A stretch of 64,000 nt of DNA from Octopus sinensis (Eukaryota): positions 52,576,001-52,640,000 of the forward strand of contig NC_043012.1 in assembly GCF_006345805.1 (NCBI RefSeq). The letters are read 5' to 3'. Each line of letters starts with the position of its first letter. Positions within the stretch are counted from its first letter, which is position 1. This document shows, in pieces, positions 20,409-59,282 of the stretch. The notes under the pieces are model-generated. The model made no database searches, was not told the DNA's origin, and saw only the letters and a list, made by a program, of their open reading frames with translations. The translations under genes were made by a program, and so were the position numbers.

Positions 20409-21954
20409 CTTTATTACCCACTAGGGGCGACACAGATGGGGACACCAAAAGACATGGGGACATAGAACATTATAATTAAAATTTATGAAAAATGAATTGT
20501 TAAGTGAAAGAAAATGATAATGTGAAAGCGATACTAACGGCCCCGTCCGTTAGCATCACTTACCTGTCCTTTGTTTTTCATAGTCACTTGAATGTTCTTT
20601 GCCAATACGAATAAATTCCATATCCATTCTTACTCCGAAATACTCATCCATATTTTCCACGAATTCATCGCTCATTCTTATATCTTTCACCTCCCAATTC
20701 TCCCTTTCACACCTCACCATAAACTCATCTATGTTCTTCTTTTCAATCACAGCATACCTAGTCTCACCAACTTCATACCATTTATACTCTTCCATTAGAC
20801 TTTTAACTTCTTTCTGTTCAGTCATAGTACAAATGTACGGCCTGATATCGAATTCAATCTCTTGTCTGTCTGTATTATTTTTTTCTTTTGTTTTCTTGTT
20901 GGGGGGGGGGGGGGGGGGCGGGGGGGTTCAATTTCTGCATGGATAGGGTGGGACTCAGAGGGTGTGGGTGGTTTTGGGGTAGATTGGTGTTCCATGTTAT
21001 TTTCTTTTCCTCGTATTCTTCTCTTCCTCTTATTTCCAGCTTCCTTCCATTTCTGTGTATTCTCTTCCTCTTCTACTGTCTCCTTCTCCTCTGGTTTCTG
21101 CTTCTCTCTCTCTGGTTCGGAATCCATTTCTTTCCCTGGGGGAGGGCAGAAGGCTCTTATGTGACCCCTCAGGCCACACTTGTAACAACGTGGAGCTCTG
21201 CCCTCCACCCACACTCTCATGATCACGTCTCCCAATCTGATGCTTTCCGCCAGGTCCACCAATACCTCGTTCTCCGCCTGTACGTTCAGCTCCACTATTA
21301 CGCCTCTCCAGCCCTCGGACTTAACCGAGGCATGGAGAATATCCACTTCGTCCTCGTGGCCGCTGATCACAGCCGCCACAATCCACTCTGCCTCCACGTT
21401 TGGTGGCACTCCATCCACCCTCACACGTGTAATCCTTCTATTCAAATACGTAGGTAGAAGTGTTACCTTTTCTGACTTCACCGCCTTCGCCGCCATCTTC
21501 CTCGCTGCACACTCACTTTTAAAATGTACAACTACGGTACCATACTTGGATCCTCGAGTCAGAAAATTAATTTCCTCCTCAGTTCTTCTCAGGGCTTCCT
21601 CTATCCACTCCATGGTTACAACTTCTACCCTCCTCCTTTCGTTTGCGAACACCCTGTAAATAATGGTCCTCTTATCATACCATTCTTTTCTCCTGGGTGT
21701 CGGTGATAGTTCCACCTCACCGCTTTCCTTTTTCATGTATTTCTGGTAACTTGGTAGCTTGGCCAAGTCGACCCCTTTCTCTTCCGCCTTCTTGGTTACA
21801 CCGGCATAGGTATAACCCAGCTTCTCGTCCAATTTCCTCGCTGCCATTTCTAGCTCCTTCTCAGACGTAGACAAGTCTGATAAAGACTCGAAAACTCCAG
21901 CCTTTTCTTCCATCAGCTTCATTGTAATTGCCTGTTCCAGTTCCTCATCTGTCG
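20409..21954 (-). mobile_element. ORF1-only non-LTR retroposon, copy B (5'-truncated, 1546 bp)
   Basis: Colinear with copy A (roughly 95% identical by eye). Flanked by TGGTGATT at 20401-20408 and 21955-21962. Truncated at the position equivalent to 23500, with TGG microhomology. Confidence 0.9.
20556..21922 (-). pseudogene. ORF1 of copy B; lacks the start region and is frameshifted at the poly-G run 20901-20926
   Basis: ORFs 20822..21922 and 20556..20825 together correspond to the single ORF of copy A. CCHC RCYKCGLRGHIRAFC is retained. Confidence 0.85.
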
Positions 21955-21962
21955 TGGTGATT

Positions 21963-23713
21963 CTTTATTACCCACTAGGGGCGACACAGAGGGGGACACC
22001 AAAAGACATGGGGACATAGAACATTATAATTAAAATTTATGAAAAATGAATTGTTAAGTGAAAGAAAATGATAGTATGAAAGCGATACCAACGGCCCCAT
22101 CCGTTAGCATCACTTACCTGTCCTTTGTTTTTCATCGTCACTTGAATGTTCTTTGCCAATACGAATAAATTCCATATCCATTCTTACTCCGAAATACTCA
22201 TCCATATTTTCCACGAATTCATCGCTCATTCTTATATCCTTCACCTCCCAATTCTCCCTTTCACACCTCACCATAAACTCATCTATGTTCTTCTTTTCAA
22301 TCACAGCATACCGAGTCTCACCAACTTCATACCATTTATACTCTTCCATTAGACTTTTAACTTCTTTCTGTTCAGTCATAGTACAAATGTACGGCCTGAT
22401 ATCGAATTCAATCTCTTGTCTGTCTGTATTATTTTTTTTCTTTTGTTTTCTTGTTGGGGAGGAGCGGGTGGGTTCACAGTCTGCAGGGATAGGGTGGGAC
22501 TCAGAGGGTGTGGGTGGTTTTGGGGTAGATTGGTGTTCCATGTTATTTTCTTTTCCTCGTATTCTTCTCTTCCTCTTATTTCCAGCTTCCTTCCATTTCT
22601 GTGTATTCTCTTCCTCTTCTACTGTCTCCTTCTCCTCTGGTTTCTGCTTCTCTCTCTGTGGTTCGAAATCCATTTCTTTCCCTGGGGGAGGGCAGAAGGC
22701 TCTTATGTGACCCCTCAGGCCACACTTGTAACAACGTGGAGCCCTGCCCTCCACCCACACTCTCATGATCACGTCTCCCAATCTGATGCTTTCCGCCAGG
22801 TCCACCAGTACCTCGGTCTCTGCCTGTACGTTCAGCTCCACTGTTACGCCTCTCCAGCCCTCGGACTTAGCCGAGGCATGGAGAATATCTACTTCCTCCT
22901 CGTGGCCGCTGATCACAGCCGCCACAATCCACTCTGCCTCCACGTTTGGTGGCACTCCTTCCACCCTTATTCGTGTAATCCTTCTGTTTAAATACGTAGG
23001 TAACAGTGTTACCCTTTCTGACTTCACCGCCTTCGCCGCCATCTTCCTCGCTGCAGACTCACTTTTAAAATGCACAACTACGGTACCGTACTTGGATCCT
23101 CGAGTCAGAAAATTTATTTCCTCCTCAGTTCGTCGCAGGGCTTCCTCTATCCATTCCATGGTTACAACTTCTACCCTCTTCCTTTCGTTTGCGAACACCC
23201 TGTAAATAATGGTCCTCTTATCATACCATTCTTTTCTCCTGGGTGTCGGTGATAGTTCCACCTCACCGCTTTCCTTTTTCATGTATTTCTGGTAACTTGG
23301 CAACTTGGCCATGTCGACCCCTTTCTCTTCCGCCTTCTTGGTTACACCGGCATAGGTATAACTCAGCTTCTCTTCCAATTTCCTTGCTGCCATTTCTAGC
23401 TCCTTCTCAGACGTAGGCAAGTCTGATAAAGACTCGAAAACTCCAGCCTTTTCTTCCATCAGCTTCATTGCAATTGCCTGTTCCAGTTCCTCATCTGTCG
23501 TGGACAAGTCTGTTAGAGACTCATAGTCCATTTCCTTCTGTCTGACAGACCGAAAACGGCCGCCAAAACAGAAAAAAGTGTAACCCGCCGAACGAGCGAA
23601 ACGCGAAACCGCATCAACGCCGTTCAGAATTTCCACAACAACAACAACGCTTTTTCTTCTTTTTTACCGAATTTTCAGGAGCCGAAAAAAACACAACCGA
23701 CCAAATGGGTAGG
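21963..23713 (-). mobile_element. ORF1-only non-LTR retroposon, copy A (apparently full length, 1751 bp; HAL1-like 'half-Tx1')
   Basis: 11-bp TSD ATTTGGTGATT at 20398-20408 and 23714-23724. 182-nt 5' UTR, single ORF, 147-nt 3' UTR ending ...GCCCCTAGTGGGTAATAAAG. No EN or RT, no LTRs, no TIRs. Confidence 0.9.
22110..23531 (-). CDS. Intact 473-aa Tx1/L1-type ORF1 (gag-like nucleic-acid-binding) protein
   Basis: First ATG at 23531 (MDYESL...). CX2CX4HX4C knuckle RCYKCGLRGHIRAFC. The preceding RRM-like region aligns by eye with ORF1 of the LINE at 46585-47186 (KRTIIYRV/KRTIVYKI, LLPTYLNRR/MIPSYLGQR, VEGRAPRCYKCG/VEGRRPRCYICG). Confidence 0.85.
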   Translation of the reverse strand: MDYESLTDLSTTDEELEQAIAMKLMEEKAGVFESLSDLPTSEKELEMAARKLEEKLSYTYAGVTKKAEEKGVDMAKLPSYQKYMKKESGEVELSPTPRRKEWYDKRTIIYRVFANERKRVEVVTMEWIEEALRRTEEEINFLTRGSKYGTVVVHFKSESAARKMAAKAVKSERVTLLPTYLNRRITRIRVEGVPPNVEAEWIVAAVISGHEEEVDILHASAKSEGWRGVTVELNVQAETEVLVDLAESIRLGDVIMRVWVEGRAPRCYKCGLRGHIRAFCPPPGKEMDFEPQREKQKPEEKETVEEEENTQKWKEAGNKRKRRIRGKENNMEHQSTPKPPTPSESHPIPADCEPTRSSPTRKQKKKNNTDRQEIEFDIRPYICTMTEQKEVKSLMEEYKWYEVGETRYAVIEKKNIDEFMVRCERENWEVKDIRMSDEFVENMDEYFGVRMDMEFIRIGKEHSSDDEKQRTGK

Positions 23714-58500: not shown

Positions 58501-58876
58501 AAGCAACAGGAGGTGGCGCACGAAGTTTCACCGCAGCGTCGACGTACCAACTACTTAGTCAGCTCGGAATCAAGTCAAAAGAAAAGCGAACATGAACTAT
58601 TTGTAAGAGATAACTGAGAAAAGCTCAATGCATTAATGAACAAAAAAGGAATGGTAGATGGAACTGAAAAGATATACAACAGCGTCACTAAAAATGTAAG
58701 AAGAATATAACCCAGTTTGAGACAATGCAACTTCATGCGGTGGCCTGTGTGGCCGAGCAATAACCTCTTCCAAAAGTTCCGAGTTCAATCTCAATTGAAG
58801 GTGGCATTTAAGTAACAGCAGGAGTCAATACCTAAGTGGACCCGTCGTCTTTAGAGTGTTAGAAACTAATGGGATG

Positions 58877-59282
58877 AAGGCGGCGAGCTGGCACAAAAGT
58901 TAGCACGCCGGGCGAAATGCGTAGCCGTATTTCGTCTGCCATTATGTTCTGAGTTCAAATTCCGCCGAGGTCGACTTTGGCTTTCATCCTTTCGGGGTCG
59001 ATAAATTAAGTACCAGTTACGCACTGGGGTCGATATAATCGACTTAATCCGTTTATCTGTCCTTGTTTGTCCCCTCTGTGTTTAGCCCCTTGTGGGTAGT
59101 AAAGAAATAGGTATTTCGTCTGCCGTCACGTTCTGAGTTCAAATTCCGCCGAAGTTGACTTTGCCTTTCATCCTTTCGGGGTCGATAAATTAAGTACCAG
59201 TTACGCACTGGGGTCGATGTAATTGACTTAATCCCTTTGTCTGTCCTTATGTGTTTAGCCCTTTGTGGGCAATAAAGAAATA
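58877..59282 (+). mobile_element. Dimeric family A SINE (full monomer plus 5'-truncated monomer) with an 18-bp TSD
   Basis: AGAAACT(A/G)ATGGGATGAA at 58861-58878 and 59283-59300. Both monomers end in the GCCC..GTGGG(T/C)A(G/A)TAAAGAAATA tail. Confidence 0.88.

Follow-up and report, generated by a model that had tools for sequence, protein, structure and literature searches.

A 3′ tail common to LINEs, an ORF1-only element and SINEs of octopods, a probable site of stringent 3′-end recognition

The DNA stretch analyzed in this study (64,000 nt of the Octopus sinensis genome, contig NC_043012.1, positions 52,576,001 to 52,640,000; referred to in full as the window) contains three types of retroelements which terminate in a similar 3′ tail. 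These are (i) a short interspersed nuclear element (SINE-A), (ii) a 1.73-kb element that encodes a LINE-type open reading frame 1 (ORF1) and lacks ORF2 (the ORF1-only, or “half”, element), and (iii) a long interspersed nuclear element (LINE-W). The tail, ~45-60 nt in length, has a conserved core of the form GTCC..TCTGTGT..GCCC-loop-GGGT-A(A/G)TAAAGAA. The positions of these elements, and of related ones at loci outside the window (designated L001, L003 and so on; octopus and argonaut DNA retrieved via annotated fragments of the proteins of these elements), are given in Table 1.

Tail-bearing elements of the window

Table 1. Retroelements, arrays and microsatellites of the window and of the sampled outside loci
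Element	Locus	Position	Strand	Features
ORF1-only unit 2	window	20398-21957	-	5′-truncated by ~190 nt; broken ORF 20822-21922; tail 20404-20454
ORF1-only unit 1	window	21958-23713	-	full length; ORF 22110-23636 (508 aa, CCHC knuckle); tail 21958-22008
ORF1-only tail-extension remnant	window	23706-23724	-	~19 nt, AATCACCAAATCCTACCCA; just upstream of unit 1
SINE-A monomer, CORE-type	window	24624-24851	+	tail module 24792-24851; hairpin 24827-24839
SINE-A dimer	window	58877-59282	+	full unit 58877-59109 (tail 59050-59109), GG, then 59112-59282 (tail 59235-59282)
SINE-B copies	window	16733-17005, 27045-27145, 35779-36095, 49590-49739	-	body as in SINE-A, other tail
SINE-B copy	window	52045-52421	+	body as in SINE-A, other tail
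(TATC)n microsatellite	window	42333-42690		adjoins LINE-W 3′ end
LINE-W	window	42691-47190	-	dead L1/Tx1-like copy; 5′-truncated, frameshifted; reverse transcriptase region short by ~715 bp relative to the full-length L007 copy
LINE-W ORF1 CCHC fragment	window	46585-46869	-	
LINE-W endonuclease	window	~44900-45750	-	
LINE-W C-terminal zf-RVT region	window	43039-43640	-	
LINE-W 3′ UTR	window	42691-43038	-	tail 42691-42739
(TCTA)n microsatellite	window	47187-47294		adjoins truncated LINE-W 5′ end
LINE-X	L007 (O. vulgaris OX597839.1)	~6215 to 1005	-	near-intact LINE
5′-truncated LINE-X	L007			
Decayed LINE-X relative	L007			
Half-2 element	L007	ORF 10554-12035		second ORF1-only family, same tail type
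Full-length LINE, Argonauta	L003	~1365-7190		
Second LINE tail, Argonauta	L003	802-849		
Two LINEs, Argonauta	L008	12762-12807, 18812-18916		
Array	L001			at least 7 ORF1-only units; 3-unit higher-order period
Array	L006	1-15652		at least 10 ORF1-only units
Array	L007	within 1-13075	one strand	half, truncated LINE-X, full LINE-X, half
Array	L007		other strand of the same region	half, half-2, deleted LINE-X′
Array	L009	8626-12440		half, SINE-head fragment, half-2-like element, 5′-truncated SINE
Array, Argonauta	L003	680-7190		LINE tail, (ATT)n, three SINEs, full LINE

Both strands of the window were scanned for the motif GCCCNNNGTGNNNANTAAAGAA with up to one mismatch. This analysis revealed six matches, located at 24827, 59085 and 59258 (plus strand; SINE) and at 20428, 21982 (ORF1-only element) and 42715 (LINE) of the minus strand, compared to none in 100 dinucleotide shuffles. 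Local alignment of the tails gave z-scores of 11 (SINE-half), 10 (SINE-window LINE) and 6.7 (half-window LINE), and for each of the three pairs 0 of 5000 dinucleotide shuffles attained the observed score. The same six tails were recovered by nhmmer profiles trained solely on LINE tails from loci outside the window (E-values of 3.6e-7 to 2.6e-3 with one training set and of 3.5e-6 to 6.3e-4 with another), with no other match at E≤1 in the 128 kb of strand searched. The homology of the tail across the SINE, the ORF1-only element and the LINE of the window is thus beyond chance.

The shared tail had been proposed in an initial annotation of this DNA, and all the tail sequences quoted there were found at the coordinates given. 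Its count of 34 matches in 44 ungapped positions between the LINE and the SINE was reproduced exactly, and the approximate 40 of 50 for the half element and the SINE is near the value of the gapped local alignment (34 identities in 40 columns). Of the two ORF1-only tails it had reported the one at 20407-20454 and overlooked the one at 21958-22008 (minus strand), and the two SINE tails, which it took as identical, differ at 2 positions.

The two ORF1-only units are 96% identical, and unit 2 directly abuts the tail of unit 1. Database matches to their ORF1 were solely “hypothetical predicted protein [Octopus vulgaris]” entries of assembly GCA_951406725.2. The parent LINE was not found among the LINE ORF1s sampled, every one of which shows 29-37% identity to that of the ORF1-only element. 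The element terminates in ...AAAGAATCACCA(AAT), with a variable extension past AATAAAGAA. At unit junctions in L007 the tail terminates in ...GAAATCTACCCAC, to which the remnant AATCACCAAATCCTACCCA upstream of unit 1 is homologous. The sequence AATCACCAAAT, which flanks the ORF1-only pair, was considered as a possible target site duplication (TSD) and rejected: it is part of the variable tail extension and recurs at junctions in L006 and L007.

The SINE-A unit is ~230 nt long. The monomer is flanked by a 16-bp TSD (TATAATGC[G/T]CAT[G/A]CAC, at 24608-24623 and 24852-24867). The second unit of the dimer begins at SINE position 45, i.e. it is devoid of the first 44 nt. A 17-bp TSD (AGAAACT[A/G]ATGGGATGA, at 58861-58877 and 59283-59299) encloses the entire dimer. 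Matching dimers were identified in L006 (22394-22800, minus strand) and L007 (30030-30447, minus strand); the joint comprises 2-3 nt, which are GG in two of the copies. Since an identical dimer is present at three loci and the TSDs enclose the whole of it, its origin in a template-jump event of its own in the window was ruled out, and the dimeric SINE-A is a propagating family.

The 3′ ends of SINE-A are precise. Four of the five copies terminate in ...AAAGAAATA (GAAATA) and the fifth in ...AAAAAAAT; none has a poly(A) tract, and TSDs of 13-17 bp are present in 4/5. SINE-A inserts at ordinary sites, and none of the five copies lies within (TATC)n. The statement of the initial annotation that none of the three element types ends in poly(A) holds for the SINE, the ORF1-only element and the window LINE, as judged by their 3′ ends.

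The window also contains older copies, named SINE-B, which have the head and body of SINE-A and a different tail (...AAATTGCTGGCCTTGTGCCAAAATTTGAAACCAATA); the pair at 52045-52421 is flanked by (ATT)n runs. The bodies of SINE-A and SINE-B agree up to ...GTAATCGACTTAATCC and then part. Beyond this breakpoint SINE-A reads CGTTTGTCTGTCC..., and it is at the same point that similarity to the 3′ untranslated region (UTR) of LINE-X, a near-intact LINE of O. vulgaris described below, starts. Therefore, the tail of SINE-A corresponds to ~60 nt from the 3′ end of a LINE-X-like UTR, shortened by a 12-nt deletion when compared to LINE-X. The occurrence of the same body with different tails indicates that the tail was exchanged between SINE subfamilies.

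The body of SINE-A contains GCCTTTCATCCTTTCGGGGTCGATAAATTAAGTACCAG, which resembles the CORE motif, and its head contains a B-box-like sequence, GGTTCAAATTCC, recognized by eye only. ARAGORN made no tRNA call on the SINE head or elsewhere in the window, and Rfam gave no match on the SINE, even at E≤10, nor elsewhere in the window. The description of the SINE as tRNA-derived was therefore left unconfirmed by both programs, and the tRNA origin of its head rests on the literature: the octopus OR-type SINE, of the tRNA-derived CORE-SINE class, was reportedly described by Ohshima and Okada in 1994. According to published annotation, tRNA-Core SINEs are dominant in octopus genomes (PMC8967140).

SINEs bearing the tail are also present in Argonauta hians. 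These comprise CORE-type SINEs and, at locus L003, a ~155-nt SINE (905-1360 and 8700-8850) with the shared tail and, by eye, tRNA-like A and B boxes (AGCTCAATTGGTAGAGC ... GGTTCAATCCC), on which ARAGORN made no tRNA call. Three direct head-to-tail copies of this SINE, from at least two subfamilies, were observed.

LINEs that carry the tail

LINE-X encodes a 438-aa ORF1 protein with a CCHC motif. Its ORF2, interrupted by one frameshift, matches the Pfam domains Exo_endo_phos, RVT_1 and zf-RVT. The element terminates in ...GTCCCATCTGTGTTCGCCCCTTGTGGGTAATAATAAAACAAC, and the LINE-X-type tail end ...AAAACAAC was observed in three of three cases. Its tail aligns with that of SINE-A and with that of the ORF1-only element at z=15 in both comparisons. 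LINE-X is the best-matching autonomous candidate among the elements sampled, ahead of the window LINE.

The closest solved structure to the LINE-X ORF2 product is human L1 ORF2p (E-values of 2e-37 for the reverse transcriptase (RT) and 1e-14 for the endonuclease), ahead of R2. Together with the APE type of the endonuclease, which lies N-terminal to the RT, this supports the placement of the tail-bearing LINEs in the L1 superclade. Several features fit the Tx1 group, if indirectly: the zf-RVT domain together with the CCHC-containing ORF1, the target specificity of the lineage of LINE-W (see below), and the published annotations of O. vulgaris, in which L1-type LINEs are given as L1-Tx1 (PMC13282606, PMC8967140).

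Four LINE tails of this group, with the same core, were identified in Argonauta hians. In L003, (ATT)n directly follows both LINE tails (847-899 and 7191-7204), and these LINEs may represent a second microsatellite-associated lineage. Comparison of LINE-X, the Argonauta LINE, the half element and half-2 revealed that their 3′ UTRs are alignable over the last 30-50 nt only, that their ORF1s are 24-37% identical and that the RTs are 59-70% identical. The conservation of the tail alone across such divergent families is the main argument for the tail being functional. Taken with the comparisons described above, it supports the view that the tail is a native 3′ module of an octopod group of Tx1-like LINEs of the L1 superclade, which the ORF1-only element and the SINE share.

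A pattern scan for the tail across metagenomes gave no matches. Three metagenome contigs (L002, L004 and L005) encode close homologs of the ORF2 C-terminus and stop short of the position of the tail. A protein in the NCBI database, P0033, assigned to a metagenome-assembled genome of “Herbaspirillum sp.”, shows 58% identity to the C-terminus of the octopus LINE ORF2; it most likely reflects contamination with animal DNA.

LINE-W terminates in ...AAAGAAACA, followed by (TATC)n. Its full-length relative in L007 (14162-20035) has repeats on both sides (region 14090-20100), as in the window. Both LINEs of Argonauta L008 run into (TATC)n, and repeats on either side of a copy recur there as well. Thus, in this lineage, represented in two octopod genera, (TATC)n was found at the 3′ end of 4/4 copies and on both sides of 3/4, including a 5′-truncated copy. 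The 3′ junction is also constant in phase: ...AAA[C/T][A/C] precedes TATC in the window and in both L008 copies, and ...AAAGT precedes it in L007. Such a target-sequence preference was seen in the W lineage only, and the lineage appears to be a Tx1-type element specific to (TATC)n. Microsatellite-specific Tx1 LINEs have been described, namely Kibi in (TC)n, Koshi in (TTC)n, and crocodilian Tx1 elements in (TTCC)n and (TTTC)n (Kojima & Fujiwara 2004, as summarized in PMC4494074). LINE-W resembles Kibi and Koshi in its residence in one type of microsatellite with a constant phase of the 3′ junction. It differs from them in its target, since (TATC)n is absent from the targets listed in that summary, and in belonging to a lineage common to Octopus and Argonauta.

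The initial annotation implied that LINE-W itself, i.e. the (TATC)n-associated LINE, drives the SINE and the ORF1-only element. The significant similarity of its tail to that of SINE-A (34/44; z=10) and the existence of a full-length relative in L007 are compatible with such a role. However, the window copy is dead, its hairpin is broken (GCCC TGTGT GACT), and the lineage is bound to (TATC)n, while the SINE uses ordinary sites (4/4 W copies, compared to 0/5 for SINE-A). In addition, neither of the octopus W tails contains the CCC/GGG stem, and the LINE-X tails are closer to those of the SINE and the half element. The window LINE is therefore not likely to be their partner, and we consider this role of LINE-W highly improbable.

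The hairpin and proposed recognition of the tail

According to the initial annotation, a small GCCC-loop-GGG(T/C) hairpin precedes A(A/G)TAAAG in all three elements. This hairpin is intact in the SINE and ORF1-only tails of the window, and it is the window LINE that departs from the description. A covariance model was constructed from 21 tails, and it recovered 48 and then 5 further tails in the fetched DNA. Within the alignment of the model, 85% of the cells of the 4-bp stem are paired, compared to 15-52% after displacement of the partner column. Stem pair 29-39 is represented by CG (n=21), GC (n=11) and AU (n=1), and pair 30-38 has one U-A variant.

The states of pair 29-39 are distributed by lineage. 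Octopus tails of LINE-X, the ORF1-only element and SINE-A have C-G at this position. Nearly all tails from Argonauta, whether of LINEs, of the short tRNA-like SINE or of the CORE-type SINEs, have G-C, and one LINE of a second family has A-U. Since the C-G state of octopus and the G-C state of Argonauta extend to LINEs and SINEs alike, the partners within a lineage share the compensated state. Overall, support for the hairpin is modest. A 12-bp outer helix, formed by TCTGTGTT with AATAAAGA, was also considered; its columns are 81% paired but invariant, without covariation, and it is not claimed here.

The sharing and conservation of the tail, the precise 3′ ends free of poly(A) and the lineage-wise compensating change of the stem are together the signature of stringent 3′-end recognition. 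We propose, with a probability of about 0.7, that an RT of the LINE-X type recognizes the tail module on RNA, presumably by binding the hairpin. Target-primed reverse transcription would then start at a fixed point just 3′ of the module and not on poly(A), and both the ORF1-only mRNA and the SINE transcript, each carrying the module, would be copied in trans. SINE-A may have entered such a system by exchanging the tail that its sister subfamilies carry for ~60 nt from the end of a LINE-X-like 3′ UTR. The stringent Tx1/L1 machinery, parasitized by a coding half-LINE and a SINE, that the initial annotation envisaged is retained in this proposal as regards a shared LINE 3′ module and the L1 superclade, though not as regards the window LINE as the partner.

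A number of observations weigh against this proposal. The covariation consists mostly of one clade-level swap and single variants, and pairs changed on both sides are no more frequent than in shuffles. The hairpin is only 3-4 bp long, its fold energies are no better than those of shuffles (z from -0.3 to -1.7), and the minimum-energy fold of LINE-X bypasses it; as noted above, the stem is absent from the octopus W-lineage tails (window and L007). LINE-X is represented at one locus only (the near-intact copy, the 5′-truncated copy and the decayed relative), always inside arrays, with no dispersed insertion of the kind seen for SINE-A. The ORF1-only element was likewise seen solely in head-to-tail arrays, and part of its copy number (the 3-unit repeat of L001) is better explained by duplication at the DNA level than by retrotransposition. 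Finally, the comparison of tails covers the window and the sampled loci only.

The shared tail might also reflect passive inheritance, a LINE 3′ end having been captured once by template switching or recombination, so that it would mark ancestry only and would not be specifically recognized. Tail swaps do occur, as shown by the one body and two tails of SINE-A and SINE-B, the stem is short and thermodynamically weak, and most pairs of the stem and of the outer helix are invariant. However, passive inheritance does not readily account for the survival of the tail alone between LINE families whose 3′ UTRs are unalignable and whose ORF1s are ~30% identical, for its retention from Octopus to Argonauta, for a compensating stem change common to the LINEs and SINEs of one lineage, or for the precise 3′ ends devoid of poly(A). 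This explanation is therefore regarded as unlikely.

Another function that may be considered for the block is the processing of mRNA 3′ ends (AATAAA with its context) in LINE and ORF1 transcripts, instead of recognition by RT. AATAAA or AGTAAA is located 6-12 nt from the end of the octopus tails, and the LINE and the ORF1-only element both require Pol II mRNAs. Nevertheless, the block is kept by a non-coding SINE. Moreover, Argonauta SINEs contain AATAGAG at the position of the octopus AATAAAG and keep the remaining part of the tail, which weighs against explaining the block simply as a poly(A) signal. The genomic copies also lack the poly(A) that polyadenylated templates with relaxed priming would leave. 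A processing module thus appears very unlikely.

The principle of tail sharing between SINEs and LINEs is already well known, and the octopus case is a new example, of a kind rare within the L1 clade. Stringent pairs with a common 3′ tail include UnaSINE1/UnaL2 of eel, a tortoise Pol III SINE with CR1, and tobacco TS with RTE (PMC3747384, and Kajikawa & Okada 2002 as cited there). As in pairs of the UnaSINE1/UnaL2 type, the octopus SINE tail is homologous to approximately the last 60 nt of the LINE 3′ UTR and contains a putative small stem-loop, and the 3′ end is precise, with no need for a long poly(A). Unlike in these pairs, the candidate partner in octopus belongs to the L1 superclade, and a terminal short tandem repeat is absent.

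In a 2012 survey, only three SINEs with L1 tails were listed among more than 800 L1-clade LINEs (PMC3747384, PMC3472496). Stringent LINEs of this clade are LINE1-1_ZM of maize and sorghum, with partners of the ZmSINE type, and L1-1_CR of Chlamydomonas, with SINEX-3_CR (Ohshima 2012, PMC3472496). A conserved 3′ stem-loop common to such a LINE and its SINEs speaks for the existence of stringent recognition in the L1 clade. The octopus elements resemble these in a putative 3′ stem-loop of the LINE and its SINEs; they differ in their animal (cephalopod) host, their Tx1-like character and the absence of poly(A), in which the Chlamydomonas pair ends.

A Tx1-type LINE has been proposed as a SINE mobilizer before: in the one published partnership of this type, Tx1-Mar LINEs, whose families are target-specific, were suggested to mobilize SINEU in crocodilians (Kojima 2015, PMC4494074). 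That relationship was inferred from common target sites and 5′ heads. As for the 3′ end, SINEU has poly(A), and a LINE with the same terminus was not found (PMC4494074). In octopods, by contrast, the link is the 3′ tail itself.

For the ORF1-only element, the counterpart is HAL1 (“half-L1”) of mammals, described as a non-autonomous derivative with ORF1 only (Bao & Jurka 2010, cited in PMC5786205). Like HAL1, the octopus half element retains only ORF1 and would need an autonomous LINE of the same clade. HAL1, as characterized in that source, depends on relaxed, poly(A)-based recognition and is dispersed, whereas the tail of the octopus element is specific, and all copies of this element were encountered in head-to-tail arrays.

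In a literature search, confined to papers and without Repbase or Dfam, no publication was retrieved that connects the SINEs of octopuses with a partner LINE. SINEs account for ~12% of the genome in O. vulgaris (PMC13282606), and an octopus-specific expansion of SINEs has been described (PMC8967140). The present results tie one abundant CORE-type SINE subfamily, and SINEs of Argonauta, to a definable group of Tx1-like LINEs, which provides a testable partner hypothesis. If the proposal holds, the few stringent LINEs known in the L1 clade would be joined by an animal case. This would bear on whether the ancestral LINE of this clade recognized its 3′ end stringently, a requirement then relaxed in mammals (PMC3472496).

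Mixed head-to-tail arrays

As shown in Table 1, coding elements with the tail form co-oriented arrays in which the 3′ end of one element abuts the 5′ end of the next, without filler or TSDs. An exact junction is exemplified by ...AAAACAAC directly followed by ATTAAGGGAGACCC. In Argonauta L003, all 12 tails detected at E<0.05 share one strand. No solitary ORF1-only copy with a TSD was present at the five loci sampled (the window, L001, L006, L007 and L009), all of which contain head-to-tail arrays; this sample is biased, since the outside loci were retrieved through annotated ORF1 proteins.

Such an arrangement could suggest that the half element is a tandemly amplified gene or satellite descended from a LINE fragment and is not mobile at all. 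Its occurrence only as arrays, of 2 to at least 10 units at the five loci, is in agreement with this, and the 3-unit higher-order periodicity of L001 is typical of unequal crossing-over. The arrays are, however, distributed over at least four different chromosome records. They also hold 5′-truncated units and are interleaved, at exact junctions, with LINE-X, with the second ORF1-only family and with SINE pieces; duplication alone cannot give rise to such an arrangement. An immobile satellite is accordingly considered distinctly unlikely. The exact junctions point to template jumping between element ends or to homing to tails, with unequal crossing-over presumably adding further copies.

In L009, the sequence following each of two tails (10264-10300 and 12288-12440) is SINE sequence with the same start (AGAAACGT[C/T]AGCACGCCG). 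In the first case, a SINE fragment of ~20 nt runs into the half-2-like element. A 5′ end of chimeric origin, or jumps that recur at one favored site, could account for this common start.

A broader reading, which we put forward only tentatively, is that one RT-recognized tail defines a self-associating community of octopod retroelements, which would include Tx1-like LINEs, several families of SINEs and both ORF1-only families. The RT might jump from the end of one RNA with the tail to the tail of another, or home to existing tails, giving rise to the mixed arrays, the SINEs would in addition disperse, and the stem would co-evolve with the machinery in each lineage. Were this so, the community would constitute a stringent L1/Tx1 system of animals that may have driven some of the SINE expansion specific to octopuses.

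In the O. vulgaris assembly (P0001-P0005, GCA_951406725.2), the ORF1-only arrays are at present given as “hypothetical predicted proteins” with multi-exon gene models, and masking is advised. One of these gene models, P0003, additionally carries many unrelated Pfam hits.

Eight further long ORFs of the window gave no Pfam domain, and several of them overlap microsatellites. (TATC)n/(GATA)n repeats are very frequent in the window (3547-3856, 6670-7132, 42333-42690, 47187-47294 and 63143-63633; ~1.7 kb per 64 kb), which is also rich in long (TA)n tracts.

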